Shown here: positions 13,484-59,500 of the stretch, one piece after another
Position numbering within the stretch: the first letter of the stretch is position 1
How the letters are laid out: every line of letters starts with the position of its first letter
Assembly (NCBI GenBank): GCA_964036045.1
Contig: OZ038379.1
Location: 19,220,001-19,284,000 of the forward strand
Source: Eutreptiella sp. 'Long Island Sound 2002'
Lineage: Eukaryota > Protista > Euglenida
DNA: 64,000 nucleotides
Reading direction: 5' to 3'
Position numbers and translations under genes: made by a program
The notes under the pieces: model-generated
What the model saw: the letters and a program-made list of their open reading frames with translations, nothing else
What the model was told of the DNA's origin: nothing
Databases searched by the model: none

Positions 13484-16165
13484 TCACATGTACCAGTCAT
13501 CATCCTCATCCCACTGATCTGCATCATGACCCCCATAACCCCACTGTGCAGCATGCGCCGTGTGGGCTTGTCTTGCGAGAGGGGCAGCTGGGGCCCGACC
13601 ATCAGTGTACAGCCACTCCTCACGATTGCGACCCGAGGCCCACCCAGTCCCTCCACACTTGCTCTTCCCCGCTGCCGTGTGCCCCCTCAAGCCCTGCCAG
13701 CTCTGTTGGTACGGCGCCCCTGCCCCCCCATGGCCTGGCCTCGCACGTTCGGCAGCACCACGGCCAACATCCACATCCCACGTATGCCACTGGCGCGGCC
13801 TTGCGTTTTCCGATGGAGGGGACACAACGACCACATGGCGGCCAGGGGTCTGTGCAGAAGTCTTGGAGCCAGGGGTGCCTGCACCGGCACTGGTGCTGGG
13901 GGTTCGCCCTTCCTGCACGGGTGGCCCACCCGGAGTGCACAAGCCTCGGCTGCTTGAGCTCAAAGCGGGGCTTGCCTGGCATACCTTCCGCACACCAGGA
14001 CCCCCCTCCGCGTCCCCGCCCCGATTCTCGACATGTATGAGGGGGCCGTTCCGTTGCCCGCAACCGTCCGGAGTCTCTGGTACTTGGCCCGAAGGCGTGC
14101 CAACTGCGAAGCGCAAGCACTTCGCAGGGGTGGGGCTGCACGAATCGGCCACGGCCGAACACAAACGCTCTCCGCCACCCTCAAACGCTGCATCTGCGGT
14201 ATGGGGGACGTGGTGGCGAGCGACATCACTGGACGCGCACTGGTCCCGAGACGTTGCGTGAAGGGGCACGGTGGTTTCTGGATTGCTCACGACAATGCGC
14301 ATCTGGTGGCCGTGCAAGTGCACACTGTGGGCGCAGGGCGACCGCACAAACCCGGCCTCACCGGGCAACTGCACAGCCTCAGATTCACTGCAGAGTGACT
14401 TGGTGCCGGCCTTCATGGGAGTTAAACCCAGCCTTTCGAGGCCATTGGCGACGGTGATGAGCATGTGCTGCCCGTGGCACCGGACAACCCGGGGATCCTT
14501 GTCGCCATCTGCACAAGCGGTACTCATCCCTGTACTCAAAGCGCTGCTTGGTTGGTGTGCAGTGCTGTTTGCAGCTGGAGACGCAACCTCCGGCTGCAAA
14601 TGGCCGCACCATTGGCATGCTTGCAGCTGATGACTGGCGTTGAGGTCTTGATGCAGATGTCCTTGGAAGTCAGTGTACAAGGACTGCACTTGGGAGTATA
14701 GTTGTGGCAGAACTATTGGGGCAGGGTGTGGCTGTTGCTGCAGCGGCTGCGACTGTGGTAGCAGCTGTGGGTCGAACCCAATGTGTGGTCTGGAGTGCAG
14801 CGTCTGATGTTGTGGAGTAGATTGCGATTGACTATGCATCTGATGATGTGGCTGAAATGGCACTGCCTGTGGCTGCACGACAACAATGGATGGCTGTTCC
14901 AGCTGATGTGCCTGATTTTGTGAGTGCATTGGCTGTGCCTGCGCCTGTGGCTGAGTCTGGAAAAGATCTTGTGGCTTTTCTGGAAGCTGCTGTGAGAGAG
15001 GTCGCATGGGCTGTTGCAGTGGGGCTGGAAAACGCTGGTCCTGTTGTGCTTGCTGTGCCTGTAGCGGCTGTTGTTCCTGCTGTTCCGGTTGCTGTTGCTC
15101 TAGCTGCGGTCCCAACAGCTTTGCCGTCATTGTGTGTGTTCCGTTCAGTTGCTTGTGCTGCGGGAGTGGCTGCTGTGGGTCTTGGTGGGGTTGCGAATGT
15201 TGCTGACAACTGGTGAGTGGCTGCTGCTCTTGTTGTTGTTGCACTGGTGCTCGTGGAAGATCCAAGTGTTGTGCGGGCTGTTGGGGCTGAACTGGCTGTG
15301 GCGGCGTCAGAGTTTGTTGTTGTGAGTGATGATGCTCTGGCAGGTGCTCCGGAAGCTGCAAAGGCTGTTGAACGTGCTCAAACTGGCAAATTGGATGTGC
15401 AGAGTGCTGCTGCTGCTGTGGCTCACATGGTGGCTGGGAAGCTGGGTCACGTCCACAAACACCACTGGTAGAAACCATGAGGCGCGGTGTACAGTAACGG
15501 TGTTGTGCATCATTGCAGCTGGGCTCAGTTGTGGTACATAGAGGAGGTGGTGCGGAAACCTGGGCTCTCGGATGCCCTTCGATTTCGGCCCAAAAAGATG
15601 CTTCGGCAACACTGTCGTTGGTGTCAAACTCATCGAATACAGGCTGAGATGTGCTCAGCATATCAATCATCATCTGCACACCGGGCATTGCAGTAGGGGC
15701 AAGTTGTACCAAAAGCCGCAGGCCAGGCGCCTGCGTATCCCATCGTAGTGTACATTCATCATCCATCAGCTCAAGCAGTTTCAGCTTCTGATTTGAACGC
15801 GATTCCTGTTCCTCTAAGGCCACCAATAGGCTGGGAGACCGTTGGGCTGAGGGCGTGTGCATCGGTTCTGACAGGCAGTCGCGGAACATGGGGCTGGGGC
15901 TCGGGGCTGCGATGGGGGACTCGAAGCCTGTGACCACAGGGGACTCGAGCTCTGTGCCACGGAGCTGTTGAATGCACTCAAATAACGCCTTCCGCTCTTT
16001 GAGTGGTGCATGGATCCCCAACTCCTCCCTCAGTTCCCACTGCTTCAGTCCAGCAAGGGTCTCACCGTCCACACCATGTTCACGGAAGTTTTGTTCAAGA
16101 TGGGCAAAATTGACTGAGTGGAGCCATTGCACTGCTTCATCCACAGACCAGTGCAGGAATCTCAT
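13484..16165 (-). CDS. SAM (sterile alpha motif) domain protein with long Gln/Pro-rich low-complexity region, 893 aa, intronless
   Basis: Uninterrupted ORF with ATG at 16165. The N-terminus WSVDEAVQWLHSVNFAHLEQNFREHGVDGETLAGLKQWELREELGIHAPLKERKALFECIQQL fits the SAM pattern (W..e.V..WL......F.e..idG..L..L...eL...lGi). Confidence 0.8.
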   Translation of the reverse strand: MRFLHWSVDEAVQWLHSVNFAHLEQNFREHGVDGETLAGLKQWELREELGIHAPLKERKALFECIQQLRGTELESPVVTGFESPIAAPSPSPMFRDCLSEPMHTPSAQRSPSLLVALEEQESRSNQKLKLLELMDDECTLRWDTQAPGLRLLVQLAPTAMPGVQMMIDMLSTSQPVFDEFDTNDSVAEASFWAEIEGHPRAQVSAPPPLCTTTEPSCNDAQHRYCTPRLMVSTSGVCGRDPASQPPCEPQQQQHSAHPICQFEHVQQPLQLPEHLPEHHHSQQQTLTPPQPVQPQQPAQHLDLPRAPVQQQQEQQPLTSCQQHSQPHQDPQQPLPQHKQLNGTHTMTAKLLGPQLEQQQPEQQEQQPLQAQQAQQDQRFPAPLQQPMRPLSQQLPEKPQDLFQTQPQAQAQPMHSQNQAHQLEQPSIVVVQPQAVPFQPHHQMHSQSQSTPQHQTLHSRPHIGFDPQLLPQSQPLQQQPHPAPIVLPQLYSQVQSLYTDFQGHLHQDLNASHQLQACQWCGHLQPEVASPAANSTAHQPSSALSTGMSTACADGDKDPRVVRCHGQHMLITVANGLERLGLTPMKAGTKSLCSESEAVQLPGEAGFVRSPCAHSVHLHGHQMRIVVSNPETTVPLHATSRDQCASSDVARHHVPHTADAAFEGGGERLCSAVADSCSPTPAKCLRFAVGTPSGQVPETPDGCGQRNGPLIHVENRGGDAEGGPGVRKVCQASPALSSSSRGLCTPGGPPVQEGRTPSTSAGAGTPGSKTSAQTPGRHVVVVSPPSENARPRQWHTWDVDVGRGAAERARPGHGGAGAPYQQSWQGLRGHTAAGKSKCGGTGWASGRNREEWLYTDGRAPAAPLARQAHTAHAAQWGYGGHDADQWDEDDDWYM

Positions 16166-16889
16166 GGGCACACAGCCACAGTCCTCATGTCATGACATAC
16201 CATTTCAAAAAGGGCCCTCAGAAATGCAACACAGAAATGAGACATCTGTTGATGCCAATGAACAGGTTTGTTCCCACAGTCAATGCATCTGGCACAATGT
16301 TTTTTTTCCAAACCGTGTTTTTTCTAAATCTGATCCAACACTCGTTGACATTTCCAAAGCTTTTTGGGGGTTACTGCATGCAGTGCACATGCAGTGCACA
16401 AACGTTGCCTAACATAGGAGCCAACCACATGGCACTCACAGCAAGGATGACGGCGATGAGGGCAACCTACAAGAAGATTCATTCCAGCTAGTTTGGGTCT
16501 TTTAACACTCTGGGAAATGGGATTGCATCCCACCGGAATGGTCTAATAAAGAGCCCACTGTCCATATGCCGTAAATACCACAAGAACAGGAACCAACCCA
16601 AAAACCACCAACCACCTCTGCACAGTAGGGCAAGCAGCAAGAAGACCAGGTGAAATATTATGTGATATCCTCACCTACTCCACCATTGCATGATTGAAGC
16701 CATGCACATCATTATATTCTTGTTGGGCTTCGCTGGTGTACTTGGGTTCAAATAGCAAATCAAACAAAGATCCAGCAACCGATCATATGGGCATGCTATT
16801 GGTGTAGGTGTAAGGTTGTTCTTGTGGTTTAGCGAGAACCACATGCACAGCTTCATTCTATTGCAGGGAACGGCGTACTCTGAGGACCC

Positions 16890-52418: not shown

Positions 52419-55400
52419 TTAGTGGTAGCGTTGGTTGTAGTTGGCAGGTGATGCTTCCGGACTATTGTAGTGTGGGACTTGGGGGGAGTATGGCATGGCT
52501 GGAGGAGGCATTGTCGAGACACTCACGACGGGGTACAACAGGTCTGAGGTGTACGCCTGCTCTCTTCCATGCCTTGTTTCTGCAGACGTCCGTTTGATGA
52601 AGTCAGCGAGCTCTTGCCTCTGAACTCGTCGGTCATCCGAAATGTCGATGATCTGGAAGATCTGGTCGAATGCAGCATCACTAATGACCAAATTGGGGTT
52701 GGCTTCTTGGACATAGGTCTGGAGGAACACGCGGCACTGCTCACGGCTCATGTTCTGTTGACCTGGTTCGCAGACATCATTCCAGATCTCGTCGACCAGC
52801 AGATCAATGCCACGATCCAAGCCCCCGCCCATATAGTTGGCTTTCAGCGCGAGTGCCCCCCGGATTTCGTCAAACGAAGCCTTGGCCTCGTCGTAGGTCT
52901 CATCGGAGCCAATCAAAAAGTCCGGAGGGTATCTGGAAGAAATGTGAGGCAATGGCAGCAAGGGCATGGATCCGCATTCATGTCATGGACAGTGATGTGC
53001 GTAAGCAGAGGGTGTGTGTGTCCCCAAGCATACTCCTCTATGGGATGCGGATGTATACTTCAAGCCCTGGTCCTCAGGAGGCATAAGACGAATGCATAAC
53101 CCATCAGAAGAAAGTGTCTTCACTGACATTGCCATAGGCGCCTTTCACTGCGACAAGAGAGTACCCCGAAGGAAACAAGATGTGAAGGCTACCCCTTGCT
53201 GCTCCCTGTGCACCTGGTGGTGCTGCAGTGCAGACCACTGGTACTACTGATGAGTACAGAACAGTTTTTGGGACAGATATCTCACAAAATGAGCATGTGC
53301 GGACCCCCGCCCCCCGTCGGTCAAGCATGTATTGTTCGAAAATCCACCATGGACCACCTCGGAGGCGAATGCTCATTTGTTAGCCTATGTTCCGCTCATG
53401 TGTAAGGCGCATGGTGAGTTGTGCACCTTGCGCACATTGCATTGTGAAGAGCTATGCTTGCTACTGCCTAGCTGCCGCCTCCCAACAGGCATACCTCCGC
53501 CGTCCAGTCTGAAAGGGGCCACAACTTGAATCAACGGGAACTAACAACTCAAAGAAAAAGGAGTTGGTTTTGAAAGACATACACTGCAGCCAGCCCTTTG
53601 CTGAGGAGGCCATCGGACAGCAGTTGACCGACCACTGTTGAGCCTGCCAAACTCTCCTCACGGCAAAAGGGTGTAACAGCTCACTGAAAGATGAGGCACT
53701 GCTGGGGGTGAGGAATACGCCGAACAGGCACCAAACGTGTTGCTACCAAATGGTCCCAAATAGCTAGAGGGAGGTCACCTCCACACAGAGCACCGTACCT
53801 GTTCACCACTTCCCAGAAGTGGTCATCGTCCCTGAACAGCGCATGCACTGGGTGCCAAGGCTGTAGACTTGCAATGAATCCTCCACTGAGACCTCCAGCA
53901 ACGGCAATTCCCAGGGTAGTCAGCAGAGCATAGGCTTGCGCTGCACACTGGTCACCGAGACTGCCTCCAGCTGCAACCTTCGGGAAATAGTCACTTGGGA
54001 ACCCCTGGCTATTGGACATTGCGATGGCAATAATACTGACGATAGCCCCCAGGATGCCCGGCATGCCATGAAGAGAGTTGACCCCACAAGTGTCTTGCAG
54101 ATTGATTGTTCTGGACAAAAAAGGCCCAATTCTTTGGAACGAGAAAGCGGAGAATGCTCCTGCGCATAACCCAACGGTCATGGTGGCCCATGGGTCAGTG
54201 ATGATGTCCGAGGCCGATCCAATGGCCACTCCTCCTGCAAGGGTGGCGTTGACCATGATCTCCATCTCCAGCTTGCCGAATAGCCATCGAGCAACACAGG
54301 CTGCTCCGACGCAACTGCCCCCAATAGAAAGCACAGTGTTGACGACGACACGGTGCTGAGGGGCACCAACAGCCAGCGCGCCGTTGAATGATGGCCAATA
54401 CATCCACAAGAAGATACTTCCCAGGAGGGCCGTCACCTCGGAGATGTATCCGTCTTGCAAGTTTTTGCTCTCAGCTGTGCGCTTGGGTTGGAAGAACCAA
54501 GTGGCAGCAACACCGTAATAGGCTCCAAAGGCATGAACGAACATGCTGCCTCCCATGTCGGTTGCCTTGTACTTTTGTACTCCGATGGATTCATTCAAAC
54601 CCCATAGGAACATCTCCCAGAAGACTAAGAAGAATAGCTGCTGCAAGTTGCACTTGCCAAGGATGGCCCCAAACGTGATCATGGCAGCACCAGCCCCAAA
54701 ATCCCCAATGATCAGATTCTCAATGGTGAGGGGTATCTTGTGCCACGTGGTCCCGCCGATCACCTGAGGGACAATCAAAGGGTTTGGCAGCCGTTGTGTA
54801 ACATGGGCGACCCTTCCGATACACAGAGCACGCACCAACGCCAAGCAAGCGCCCACACTGCCGCCCCCAGCCCCATGGTCAAGTGCCCCCCCTGTGCACA
54901 ACGGTTCCCCCACACCTCGGGGGAACATGACCAAAGTGACGGTTCCCTCATCCCCCAGGGACTGGACAAGGGAGGCGGAGGGGTGAGCTGACATCCCCCA
55001 CAACGACTGGTACCTGATGCCAAAATCCGTTGCTCAAAATGCCCCACTGCAAAGCCCAAACTGAGATGATCCAGTTGAAGGCCAGTGCCGACCACATGGA
55101 GGTCTTGATAAAAGTCATCAAAAAGCCGAAACCAATGAAGATCATCACGTGAACATCTTGGAAGAAGGGATACAGATTTTGGACAACATCCTTGGCGTCG
55201 GCTTCACTGACGGATGTGCTGGGCTGGATCTCATCAGAGAATCGTGTGAAGAACCCGAAAAACAAAATGGCGACGGCCTGGGCCACCACAAATGCAAGTT
55301 CCCCGTAGCCATAGTGCCGAGGAGGAGATGGTTTGATCAGTTCGACTGGCTTTTGAAGTTCGGTCTCCGAGAAGTTTGTATCAGCATCCTGAGTTCGCCG

Positions 55401-55523
55401 AGCCAAATTCTCACGGGGTGCTCTCCTTTCGTCAATGGGCACGAAGACGTCGTGGACAAGACCCCGCTGGTCAACGGACCGATGTTCCCCATGCTCACGC
55501 GGTGGTGGGTAGTTTGCTGCCAT
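52419..55523 (-). CDS. Rh: Rh-family ammonium/gas transporter fused to a C-terminal EF-hand pair, 3 exons, 662 aa
   Basis: join(55014-55523, 53799-54763, 52419-52932) = 1989 nt, with junctions CAG|GTACCA..ccctcag|GTG (HQ|VIG) and AG|GTACGG..ttcttccag|A (VNR|YPPD). Rh signatures: YPFFQDVHVMIFIGFGFLMTF, GDF, DMGGSMFVHAFGAYYG, FLWMYWPSFN, NATLAGGVAIG, DTCGVNSLHGMPG (twin His intact). EF-hand region: EIWNDV...REQCRVFLQTY...SDAAFDQIFQIIDISDDRRVQRQELADFIKR. The extreme C-terminus may be alternatively spliced (GTGAGT at ~52520). Confidence 0.88.
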
Positions 55524-55552: not shown

Positions 55553-55931
55553 CGAGTGTTGATGCACAAACAAGCTCAACCGAGCATCAACTCTCTGTCG
55601 TCCGCAAAACACAAAAGCAGTAAGCTACATAACTGTCACACAACGATTTACATGACTCACGCATGCAGTTGGGGGGAGGGGGGGAATGCACCGCACACCT
55701 ATTTCACCTGGAGATGGGCCCATTTGCCCCATGCATGAAATAACCTCCACAAGAAGCTACAAACCGCAAAACAGCAATACATGGTGCTGCAGCCTTGGCA
55801 GCTTGGACTAAAAATGTGCTCATCCTACTCCACCACCCAAAAGGTCAGCTCCACAGTATTCGTGCAACCAGCCCGTCGTGACGATGTTGCCCCTTGTGTT
55901 GTGTGCATACAACGGGGGTGGTAGCTTTCAG

Positions 55932-55961
55932 CCTGACCCTAACCTTAACCCTAACCCTAAC
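55932..55961 (+). repeat. Interstitial telomere-like repeat (CCTGAC CCTAAC CTTAAC CCTAAC CCTAAC)
   Basis: Five consecutive TTAGGG-type hexamers or variants, followed by a poly-C tract. Confidence 0.7.
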
Positions 55962-56478
55962 CCCCCCCCCCCCCCCCTCACCCCTGGCTGGACACCCCCA
56001 TGACCCCCGGCCAGACCCCCCCCCCACGACCCCCGGCAGGAACCCCCCCCGAAGGAACTCTGGGCTATGGTGCGTGAGCACAAGACGCGATCAGCACAAA
56101 GCGCAGAAAGAAATGTGGCTCGTCAGTGGCCTATAAGACCATAGGTACCTTTCTGTCGACAAGGACGCAAAGATGCCAGTGGACGGACCACTGAAAAAGC
56201 GAACTGCAGTGAGGACGCGGCGGTACGTACAAGACCATCGCTATGCAGGCCTCACCGGATCAATCAGTCAACCTGTCACTGAGTTCACATACAACAGGAA
56301 ACGCCAGAGACCCCTCCCCCCGGGGCCGAGGCCCCAAACGGATTGATGTCGACGGATCCAGCAATGGGGTAAGGTAAGAGAGGATGGGAAAATCATGGCA
56401 CCAGTCGGCGCAAAACTGGCTGCACGGCCCAGCATGTGGCATGTGCCACGAGGCATATGCCTGGTCAGACCAAACTGT

Positions 56479-56512
<34 letters not shown>

Positions 56513-56524
56513 ACCCCCGGGTAG

Positions 56525-56563
<39 letters not shown>

Positions 56564-59500
56564 ACCCCCCGAGTTTTGAAAGATAGTGTTGGGGGGTGGG
56601 TCGCATCAGGACTGGTTGTAGTCACCCCCCCCCCCCCCCCCCGTGGTGAGGGCTTGTTTTGCTAGTTTGATGCTCCTCGTTGTGGGGACCCCACGAATGC
56701 AAGGCTTATGGAGCCACTTTGGTTGATCCATGGTGTTGGAGTGACAGGAGGGTAGGGGGCATTGGGCCATCATTTTTTCTTTTTGTGGGAACGCGAAGAA
56801 TGTGTGGATTACTGGCGAATTTATTCATCCCCGGTGTCGGGATCGTGAGAGGGCAAGGGGTATGTCGGCAATCAAGCAATCATCCATAGTTTGTGATAGT
56901 CCATCATGCATCTTGCATAATTCTTCCTTTGTAATGGCCAGGGTTTTACTAGTTCAAATGTGCTTGCACAACCCAAGATGTGGCAATGGTCACAGCTATG
57001 CAGCCCAATAGCCACATGGGCCAGTACTAAGACTTGATGCCAAAACCTAGGTCATTCTACATGCCCATGTCAGCCCGACACACGATAAAAGAAAAAGGAA
57101 AAGACTAATGCCTACCCTAGAATAGCACAACGGTCAATGGCACGCACCAGGCGTGAGGATGCGTCCTGCCAAACGTGCTTGGCCAGGAGCTGGGAGTGCC
57201 TCAGGATAGTGCAAAGGGCCGATGTTCCATGTCCTCCCTAAGGCACTTCAACCTCCACGCCTAGCACCAACGGCAAGGGCCATATTTTCCAACCAGGTGA
57301 TCATCATGTCCCTCACCTAGTCCTCTTCCACCCCCCCGAAAAGTCGTCCTACTCCCCCTCCGCCCCATTCTCCACTTGCCCCCCCCCCCCCTCCCCCCCA
57401 CCCCGTGCTACTCCGTCTTCGACTGCTCCGTGTTTGATCGTAGCATTCATCTGGCGTCCTCTTTTGAGGTCTTGGAGAGATGCGTGGTGACCTCCACGTA
57501 TAGTCCATTGGACAAGGAGGTCTCAAGCCCCCCGCACTGTTGCCGATTCCTACCTCGTAGGCGAATCACGGTCCGAGACGGCATGGTGTTGGCGTTGACA
57601 AGGTTAAGTCTTTACATTTGCACGCCACAAAAGCAAATTGTGACCAAATAGTTGTCATCCGAGTTTTGTCATGATGGGAGGCCGCGTCATCTACTTGAAC
57701 GTTGCATGAGTATTAGTACCACTGCTTCGCCACCTCACCTGGGGTGTGTGCCTAGTTGGCATAATTCGGTGAATGCTTTTCGACTCGAATGGTTGTATCA
57801 CAAGAAAGAGTTGTTGGTGACAATCATGTGTATGGACATTAAAAATCATTGGTTTGCGTGTTGTGCAAAGATGGCCTAAAGTTTTTGGGCCAAATGTCAT
57901 GGACATCACAATTTCACTAATAATACTCCACCACGTTTGATTTTATTTGGGTGAAATGAGTTGTGGTGTAAAGAGGTGCGATCCCTGCAATGTGTTGGTA
58001 CTTAGAATGCATTTTAATACACCACAGGCATGACATGAGCCCTGGAATTGCTGTAGTCCTCAAGACAATGCGAAGATATCTTTTTGTTCACGCATTCATT
58101 AGTCTAGTGTACTCGCAATGTCGTTGTTGTGGTTGGTTGCGGGGGTGGGGGCTTTGGTTTGGAATGCCTTTCTTGCATTGGCAGCTGCACACATTTCCTC
58201 AAGATATTCATCACACATCCTCAAGCGTACTTCGGATTTATGAAATTGAAGAATGTTAAAAGTGTGATTGGCATTACTGTAAACCATAATACCACTACCG
58301 TTAGCGAGGTTCCAATCATGGGACACCCATTAAGATCAAACCACGACTCTTCTTTCACAATCTTGTCTTGATGTTGGTATGATGAGTCTTGGTGAACCCT
58401 TTGTGAACCGTTTTTTTTTACTTTGGGTCGCATTTGACGAATTTTGGACGCATTTTTTTTTTGCATGGTGCCTTGCTATTGTGCCCGCTTGCTGTGCTTT
58501 CTTTTGCTATAAACTAGAGGAAAATTAAGTACTTTGGAATTGTGTTCACATTCACACCCCGGTGCACAAAAGCCATATAGTTTCACATGAATTTGGCGAA
58601 CGCGACTTTCTCACGAATTTTGCATTAATCTTACATTCATGCCACATGTCTTTTCCCCACAACTCACACATTGTTTCCCTTGTGTAACAGAGCTTTATTG
58701 GCGTCATGTCCCAACACTTGTCTCGGCTCGGTATGTGCCAGACTTCGCTGCCAACGCCCACTGCCGCGGAATCTAGGAGAGTCTCCCCCTTGATGTAATG
58801 TTCTTCTCTTTGGCCAAAAATATCAACATAATGTCTTGGGCCTCAATAAACGGGGGCATGGCATAGAAAGCCATTTGGTCAAAGTCCACCGGGGGAAAGA
58901 ATGAATTTCTTCTAAAACTTCTTCCTCGCGTATTATGGAAGAGTAGGGACATTTCTTATGTATGTTGCGCATCTCCGTCTTGTCCTTCTGGGCAAGCTGC
59001 CACCCACAAGCTAAAGCCGCCAATCGGGTGCTGCGATGCAGCGCAATAGTACTGTGACAATGGCAGTGCAACTAAATGACAATTGTACCCCCATCACCCC
59101 TTGATTGGTAACGGGATGGGGGTCGGCATAAGTGACTTGTGGCCCAGATGCTGCAAACCGGCATGAAGGAGTGCAAGGCCGAGCGAGAGAGCGCCATGGG
59201 GGTGGCGACCACGCATCGTGAGTGCTCCGACCAATGCCCGGGTGTGCCTTGGCTGAACACCCGGCGCGAGAATATGGATGGCGCGACAAGCGGGTCTTTC
59301 AAGGGTCCGAGCGGTGCACAATGTATCGTGGCCACCCAACATTTGGTATCAATACCTTATTCTCCTCCGAAAACGAGGACAACACCACCCCCTATTTGCA
59401 CCCTTTTGGCACGCAAACAAACATTTTGGCGCATGGGGCGCGAGACTTTAACCTAATTTATTGATAACCTTGTCCATTTGATCACCTTTTCCAAGCCCCC

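Follow-up and report, generated by a model that had tools for sequence, protein, structure and literature searches.

Introduction

Can a membrane channel of the Rh family be encoded together with a domain of the calcium-sensor type in one gene, and if so, might calcium act on the channel through the attached domain? This question is raised by a locus in a stretch of 64,000 nucleotides from the alga Eutreptiella sp. 'Long Island Sound 2002' (assembly GCA_964036045.1, contig OZ038379.1, positions 19,220,001 to 19,284,000 of the forward strand), referred to here as the window. Three exons on the minus strand, between positions 55523 and 52419 of the window, are predicted to encode an Rh channel that continues into a cytoplasmic tail of 170 residues with two units resembling EF-hands. 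How Rh channels are regulated is poorly understood, and it is debated whether their cargo in algae and protists is NH3, NH4+ or CO2, so that a natural Rh channel with a built-in domain of the calcium-sensor type would provide a handle on both questions. The explanation that we find best overall, and consider moderately probable, is that the gene specifies an Rh channel, a linker and an EF-hand domain resembling those of S100 proteins and parvalbumin, and that flux through the channel may be tuned by Ca2+. The different parts of this explanation are not equally secure, and each of them is weighed below against the alternatives to which it is exposed.

The Rh exon and the tail exon as parts of one gene

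The predicted gene begins with the ATG at 55523. Exon 1 (55523-55014) has 170 codons, ends in phase 0 and encodes residues 1-170, which consist of a hydrophilic N-terminus of 75 residues followed by the first transmembrane helices of the Rh domain. Intron 1 (55013-54764) is of the GT..AG type (CAG/GTACCA ... CCCTCAG/G, phase 0; the slash marks the splice junction) and is followed by exon 2 (54763-53799; residues 171-492), which encodes most of the Rh channel and terminates in FRDDDHFWEVVN. Intron 2 (53798-52933), also GT..AG but of phase 2 (AG/GTACGG ... TTCTTCCAG/A), leads to exon 3 (52932-52419), which encodes the 170-residue tail and ends with TAA at 52421-52419. Scripted assembly of the three exons yields a frame of 662 residues that is open throughout. 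The initial annotation of the window, which was made from the letters of the DNA, had described intron 2 as joining the Rh exon in frame to the tail, and its coordinates and splice motifs were all reproduced. When intron 2 is left unspliced, exon 2 runs on for 39 extra codons past the donor to a stop at 53683-53681, inside the intron.

Homologues of this protein were sought with the unspliced open reading frame (ORF) of 440 residues as the query, which made proteins of up to 770 residues eligible, and the tail was then compared with the matches. Among the closest Rh relatives there are about 17 (49-70% identical) in which the motif ...DDDHFWEVV-xx- continues without a break into YPxEYL.G.DE.YDE.K... 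and from there into the rest of the tail. The predicted splice in the window yields HFWEVV-NR-YPPDFLIGSDETYDEAK (YPPDFL), in which the spacing is the same as in these relatives. Unbroken ORFs that contain the Rh domain and the tail in the order and spacing of the window occur at the loci L001, L002, L004, L006 and L007. Tails homologous to that encoded by exon 3 occur in Rh proteins from other contigs, with expectation (E) values down to 1e-23, and a phmmer scan with the tail against a library of 1.84 billion proteins returned an Rh-protein tail at E 4e-21 as well as further fragments that span the joint (P0123, P0124, P0127, P0135 and P0137). The ciliate homologues, which are described further on, match the residue spacing across the intron 1 junction too (GFWHQV...).

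An alternative would place exon 3 outside the Rh mRNA, either because the Rh gene ends at 53681 and is followed by a separate EF-hand gene of 182 residues, or because the joined form is a minor isoform. The frame of exon 3 does possess an upstream ATG of its own, at 52967, and the two ORFs appear as separate entries (P0001 and P0121) in prokaryote-style gene calls. Furthermore, the Rh proteins of a tail-less sister clade, among them the complete protein P0005, stop no more than two residues away from where the exon 2/3 boundary lies. The ORF from 52967 to 52419 was nevertheless rejected as a separate gene, since the 12 residues between its ATG and the splice acceptor match no homologue and the conserved HFWEVV-xx that precedes YP is supplied by the last residues of exon 2. 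The homologues, moreover, fuse exactly these parts in one ORF, and three of them do so on single-gene nanochromosomes.

A second line of evidence comes from a closely related genome, the sister genome, in which the same locus lies on an 844-kb contig (L003) with its start and stop codons (ATG and TAA), its reading frame and the GT..AG pairs of both introns preserved. Identity between the window and L003 is 95.4% in exon 1, 98.5% in exon 2 and 94.3% in exon 3 (the last without gaps), and no frame-breaking gap occurs in the 1,986 coding bases; 5' of the ATG, identity drops to ~54%. Intron 1 is 84% identical, with both splice sites kept. Both ends of intron 2 and the exons next to it reach 89-98% identity, again with intact splice sites, whereas the core of the intron (53092-53727 in the window, 636 bp; 5249-5878 in L003, 630 bp) is without detectable similarity. 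A repeat or an inversion was considered as the cause of this divergence and rejected, because the core showed no similarity to L003 on either strand and no second copy was detected elsewhere in the window. The initial annotation had allowed that transcripts might end at the read-through stop at 53681. Both the read-through peptide and the position of its stop differ in the sister genome, in which the splice sites are conserved, and an ending by read-through was therefore rejected as the conserved form of the protein.

The unbroken homologues, the ciliate nanochromosomes and the conservation of the splice sites in the sister genome constitute three independent comparative tests. Because of their agreement, we consider it very probable from these sequence comparisons that the Rh exon and the tail exon form a single gene and that the fusion is real, much as the initial annotation had proposed, and correspondingly improbable that exon 3 is foreign to the Rh mRNA.

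The comparison with the sister genome also bears on whether the gene is likely to function. Synonymous and replacement codon changes number 11 and 3 in exon 2, and 4 and 11 in the last 48 residues of the protein; the C-terminal extension formed by these residues appears to evolve almost neutrally. Nearly neutral change in the final ~50 codons might be expected if the locus were a decaying or unexpressed paralogue without function, another Rh-EF-hand gene doing the work in its place. The three open exons, the intact splice sites, the excess of synonymous changes in exon 2 and the coding bases free of frame-breaking gaps all speak against such decay, which we regard as highly improbable.

The Rh channel domain

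The Pfam model Ammonium_transp (PF00909) matches the product of exon 2 with 168 bits (E 3.5e-49) and that of exon 1 with 27.9 bits, both of them above the cut-off of 23.2. Among proteins of solved structure, the best relatives are human RhCG (3HD6, E 5.1e-62) and RhAG (7UZQ, E 3e-57), over 310 residues, followed by the weaker matches to a bacterial Rh50 (3B9W, E 2e-33) and to an Amt protein (6EU6, E 4e-11). By these E values the channel domain is nearer to Rh than to Amt/Mep proteins, and database sources name its relatives 'ammonium transporter Rh'. When aligned with RhCG, the window protein keeps the pore residues, namely the Phe gate (F192 and F296), the conserved Asp (D239) and the twin His (H247 and H402), so that the earlier claim of an intact pore holds. 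The counterparts in RhCG we take to be F130, D177, H185, F235 and H344, with a constant chain offset of +5. Judged by its sequence, the window protein is an Rh-type channel, presumably for NH3/NH4+ and possibly for CO2, with no sign of lost conduction. The C-terminus of Amt, Mep and Rh proteins is cytoplasmic, and this is the side of the membrane on which the tail would lie.

The cytoplasmic tail as an EF-hand domain

The tail begins with a linker, YPPDFLIGSDETYDEAKASF... (52821-52931; residues 493-529); conservation in the tail family is highest here. The helical linker had been put at ~50 residues in the initial annotation; the stretch that precedes the first EF helix is shorter, at ~37 residues. 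The linker is followed by a first EF-hand (52701-52820; residues 530-569), a helix-loop-helix unit with the degenerate loop CEPGQQNMSREQ at 52772-52737, and a second EF-hand (52566-52679; residues 577-614) with the loop DISDDRRVQRQE at 52646-52611. The C-terminal extension (52422-52565; residues 615-662) is rich in Pro, Ser and Tyr and is probably disordered, with a predicted local distance difference test score (pLDDT) below 50.

For analysis of the family as a whole, 26 tails were brought together in an alignment (A1), in which the linker has the consensus YPxxxxxGxDExYxxxK. The Pfam model EF-hand_7 is matched at E <0.01 by 14 of the 26 (best E 6e-11), and single-hand models are matched by 10-11 of them, while the Pfam cut-offs for EF-hands are reached, among the tails inspected, only by P0145 and P0136. 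A profile built from A1 retrieved only EF-hand chains from the PDB (an Entamoeba CaBP, secretagogin, calbindin, SCaMC and S100 proteins), and the phmmer scan of the 1.84 billion proteins ties the tail to free multi-EF-hand proteins with E values of 3e-8 to 1e-5.

Structure prediction leads to the same fold. The AlphaFold model of the window tail has helices at positions 20-33, 38-53, 63-77, 85-95 and 105-122 of the tail and short beta bridges at 60-61 and 103-104 that connect the two loops. A Foldseek search of the PDB with this model returned S100 proteins, parvalbumin and other EF-hand proteins as all 50 of the top 50 matches, with a template modelling (TM) score of ~0.67 normalized by the target; for the best of these, the probability is ~1.0 and sequence identity 11-20%. 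The full-length homologue P0013 was modelled with a pLDDT of 87.5 and a predicted TM score (pTM) of 0.82, the tail having pLDDT values of 71-91 and the linker 71-88, and its model contains the two short beta bridges that are typical for paired EF loops, in the same geometry as in the window tail. We are confident from the family profile and the predicted structures that the tail has an EF-hand fold.

A conserved Rh-EF-hand subfamily

Several of the homologous genes reside on very small DNA molecules. The contigs L001 (1,978 bp), L004 (1,860 bp) and L007 (1,940 bp) have C4A4/G4T4 telomere repeats at both ends, and each is thus a complete molecule with one intronless gene for an Rh domain plus tail; on L008, such repeats are present at the 5' side. 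In L006, L007 and L008, TAA and TAG occur at conserved Gln positions and are read as sense. The telomeres and the use of TAA/TAG for Gln identify these molecules as macronuclear nanochromosomes of spirotrich ciliates. L001, L004, L007 and L008 come from metagenome assemblies in ENA, where prokaryote-style gene calling truncates the genes at TAA/TAG. The nearest relatives of the window protein in the Rh domain are ciliate proteins, P0012 (70% identical, on L008) and P0004 (68%, on L007). The intronless versions on nanochromosomes would be easy experimental material.

In a tree of Rh domains from which the tails had been removed, the window protein falls in a clade of 27 rows with a Shimodaira-Hasegawa-like approximate likelihood ratio test (SH-aLRT) support of 100. 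It comprises 21 rows of the tail-bearing group along with five proteins that lack the tail and cluster tightly (P0005, P0007, P0009, P0010 and P0015). These five are the proteins whose ends lie so close to the exon 2/3 boundary, at most two residues from it. P0005 among them is represented by a complete ORF in a transcriptome of Euglena longa (by its accession prefix; bioRxiv 10.1101/573709). The coincidence of their ends with the exon boundary suggests that the EF-hand tail was gained or lost there as a module. More distantly related Rh proteins terminate in short acidic stretches. The Rh-domain tree places the window gene nearer neither to the tail-less clade nor to the clade of ciliate EF-hand proteins, and it does not separate shared ancestry from gene transfer between ciliates and the alga.

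The C-terminal extension is absent from the ciliate homologues, and a similar one was found only in P0123, which is encoded by L005, a JGI contig (3300042057) with a G+C content of 61% and the standard genetic code. P0123 combines an Rh C-terminus with an EF-hand tail in which the loop-2 consensus is lost, and its Ser/Pro-rich extension resembles that of the window protein. L005 probably represents another, non-ciliate lineage with the fusion.

Searches for the architecture elsewhere were less productive. No protein from a named organism with the fusion was present among the candidates (up to 8,000) of a word-based search with the whole of P0013, and the corresponding search with its tail alone returned only P0016, the tail being too divergent for a word index. 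In the ESM Atlas, no large cluster combines an Rh domain with EF-hands. The EF-hand scores of the full-length fused proteins lie under the Pfam cut-offs and their precomputed annotations list PF00909 only, which is probably why the architecture has so far gone unflagged; a conserved combination of domains has probably been overlooked by routine annotation. In a search of full-text literature, most subscription journals being outside its reach, we found no description of EF-hands fused to Rh or Amt proteins, in agreement with the initial annotation, which was not aware of a characterised Rh-EF-hand fusion. The initial annotation had also raised the possibility that the architecture is already widespread and described: in the literature searched it is undescribed, but it is no one-off, being shared with spirotrich ciliates and other microbial eukaryotes. 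On the strength of these sequence matches, the window gene is not unique and belongs to a conserved, apparently undescribed Rh-EF-hand subfamily.

Does the tail bind calcium, and does calcium act on the channel?

The second loop, DISDDRRVQRQE, has the residues D1, S3, D5, V8, Q9 and E12 and carries Arg at position 6; the first loop is degenerate. Both of these observations had been made in the initial annotation and were reproduced from the sequence. Loop 2 together with the residue that follows it fits the EF-hand consensus, expressed as a pattern of the PROSITE PS00018 type; shuffled tails fit the same pattern in 219 of 200,000 cases. The ligand positions of loop 2 are unchanged in the sister genome. 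Of 16 relatives to which the pattern was applied, 10 fit the consensus, many of them with canonical DxNxNG or DxDxDG loops, and the loops of the ciliate loci L006 and L007 are canonical by eye; Gly or Asn occupies position 6 in many relatives. The prevalence of the consensus among these relatives, together with L006 and L007, speaks for Ca2+ ligation as the ancestral state and also the usual one. Loop 1 is degenerate throughout the family and aligns with the canonical first loops (IWxDxDxDxSG...) of free EF-hand proteins such as P0131 and P0143; it might therefore be viewed as a decayed hand, as in pairs of the S100 type. We would give even chances to the binding of Ca2+ by the window copy.

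If Ca2+ is bound, a mechanism for its action can be proposed. The EF-hand domain would lie at the cytoplasmic face of the Rh trimer, with the conserved linker along that face; the confidence with which linker and tail are predicted in the full-length P0013 model is compatible with such docking. A single Ca2+ would be bound at loop 2, and the dead first hand would merely pair with the second in an S100-like manner. Opening of the EF pair upon Ca2+ binding might then shift the linker, and this shift might in turn alter the cytoplasmic vestibule or a contact with the neighbouring subunit, such that flux would be tuned by cytosolic Ca2+. Such an arrangement would be the equivalent in cis of the regulation of plant AMT1, whose C-terminal domain is acted on in trans by Ca2+-dependent kinases. 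By analogy with known systems, we regard Ca2+ control of transport by the window protein as possible, though with more doubt than confidence. The stronger proposition that the Rh channels of the subfamily are directly gated by Ca2+, one EF site in cis coupling Ca2+ transients to the permeability for NH3, NH4+ or CO2, is somewhat unlikely on present evidence. If it is true, these proteins would be the first ligand-gated members of the Amt/Mep/Rh superfamily, conserved between ciliates and an alga, and they could couple permeability within milliseconds to ciliary or flagellar excitation or to light or CO2 signalling.

Several observations weigh against a tail that folds, docks and responds to Ca2+ in this way. 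The initial annotation had recognized two units like EF-hands and had suggested that the model be examined with InterPro/HMMER. Against Pfam, the Rh portion exceeds the cut-off for Ammonium_transp, but the window tail scores below the Pfam gathering score for EF-hands, with 17.8 bits (E 0.0043) against 30 for EF-hand_7, and 13.2 and 12.7 bits (E ~0.08-0.1) against ~25 for EF-hand_6 and EF-hand_1. The description of two EF-hand-like units thus stands with respect to fold, according to AlphaFold, Foldseek and the family profile, but one of the two loops is dead: loop 1, CEPGQQNMSREQ, is without ligand residues at positions 1, 3, 5 and 12. In loop 2, Arg replaces the usual Gly at position 6 in the window and the sister genome alike, and six of the 16 relatives tested (P0006, P0011, P0036, P0123, P0137 and P0138) have lost the loop-2 consensus, from which it follows that the module can work without canonical Ca2+ ligation. 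The model of the isolated window tail is of moderate confidence, with a mean pLDDT of 62 and 70-81 in the core, and the putative docking of the tail to the channel is read solely from pLDDT and pTM. Finally, codons 1-120 of the tail have accumulated 6 synonymous and 7 replacement changes relative to the sister genome, and because exon 2 has 11 and 3, the structured tail appears to be under weaker constraint than the channel.

These observations might be accommodated by a fusion that is real but has a calcium-independent tail, in which the EF-fold module would serve in docking, in trimer contacts or in the binding of a partner; in a variant of this proposal, the tail would be an autoinhibitory plug that is freed by phosphorylation of its Ser/Thr/Tyr-rich end. 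A first loop that is dead in every family member, a second that six relatives have lost and that has Arg at position 6 in the window, a score below the gathering threshold and selection that is relaxed relative to the channel would all be in keeping with such a role, as would the fact that conservation within the tail peaks in the linker (YPxEYL.G.DE.YDE) and not in the loops. It is less easily reconciled with the retention of all the side-chain ligand positions in loop 2, which are the same in the sister genome, or with the consensus loops in 10 of the 16 relatives tested and the canonical ones of L006 and L007. We consider the calcium-independent tail the main rival, a minority prospect but one to be taken seriously, and continue to favour an Rh channel with an EF-hand domain through which Ca2+ might tune the flux.

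Other features of the window

The surroundings of the gene contain little that can be compared with known proteins. An ORF of 895 residues (13487-16171, minus strand) starts with a SAM domain (SAM_2, E 2e-11) and has no Pfam match in its remainder, and seven other ORFs of 270-440 residues in the window are without a Pfam match. As the SAM domain is the sole Pfam match in these large ORFs, the neighbourhood provides no functional context for the Rh-EF-hand gene. On the 5' side of the gene, the regions 55930-56030 and 56260-56625 contain an interstitial telomere-like run of TTAGGG-type units at ~55932-55960 (in the minus-strand reading) and long poly-G/poly-C tracts, which give rise to spurious ORFs for poly-Gly and poly-Pro.

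Comparison with known systems

The window channel shares its fold and family with RhCG, RhAG and Rh50, as well as the motif ...D(D/E)xxxWE that follows the last helix. Known Rh proteins, however, have short acidic or ankyrin-binding tails, whereas the window protein continues for another 170 residues, 120 of which are structured, and to our knowledge no known Rh protein carries a folded EF-hand domain. Mammalian RhBG binds ankyrin in trans. Among the metagenomic proteins there is an Rh protein of 739 residues (P0206) that is fused to ankyrin repeats (PF12796, PF00023 and others).

The C-terminal region of plant AMT1 is a regulatory handle of the trimer, on which CBL1-CIPK23 is one of the kinase systems that act. 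CPK32-dependent phosphorylation of AMT1;1, cited in PMC9561101, is a recorded case of Ca2+-dependent control in trans of the C-terminal domain of an Amt protein. The likeness to the window protein lies in the use of a cytoplasmic C-terminal region of a trimer as a handle fed by Ca2+ signalling. In plant AMT1, however, the sensor is a separate kinase or CBL protein, the signal is phosphorylation and the channel belongs to the Amt branch, whereas in the window protein a sensor-like domain is part of the channel polypeptide and the channel belongs to the Rh branch.

The fusion of EF-hands to transporters is in itself a familiar theme. In the mitochondrial ATP-Mg/Pi carrier SCaMC/APC (4ZCU, 4N5X) and in aralar/citrin, fused EF-hands gate transport by Ca2+, and the regulatory domain of SCaMC is matched by the tail family profile at E 5e-4 in the PDB. 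SCaMC and aralar have four N-terminal EF-hands on a mitochondrial-carrier fold, whereas the window protein has, C-terminal to its Rh channel, one hand that looks functional and one that is dead. The combination of a non-canonical first hand with a canonical second one recalls the S100 proteins. These are free dimers, however, in which the first loop is a pseudo-loop of 14 residues that ligates through the backbone, and the likeness of the window tail to them is one of fold.

Fusions of Amt or Rh channels to signalling modules occur among the structural neighbours of the window channel. The Ks-Amt5 histidine kinase (6EU6), Amt-MCP and Amt-PII resemble the window protein in that an Amt/Rh channel is joined to a cytoplasmic signalling domain. 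In the Amt signalling fusions the channel is thought to be the sensor that drives an output domain, whereas in the window protein the fused domain is of the input, or sensor, type and the residues of the channel are intact.

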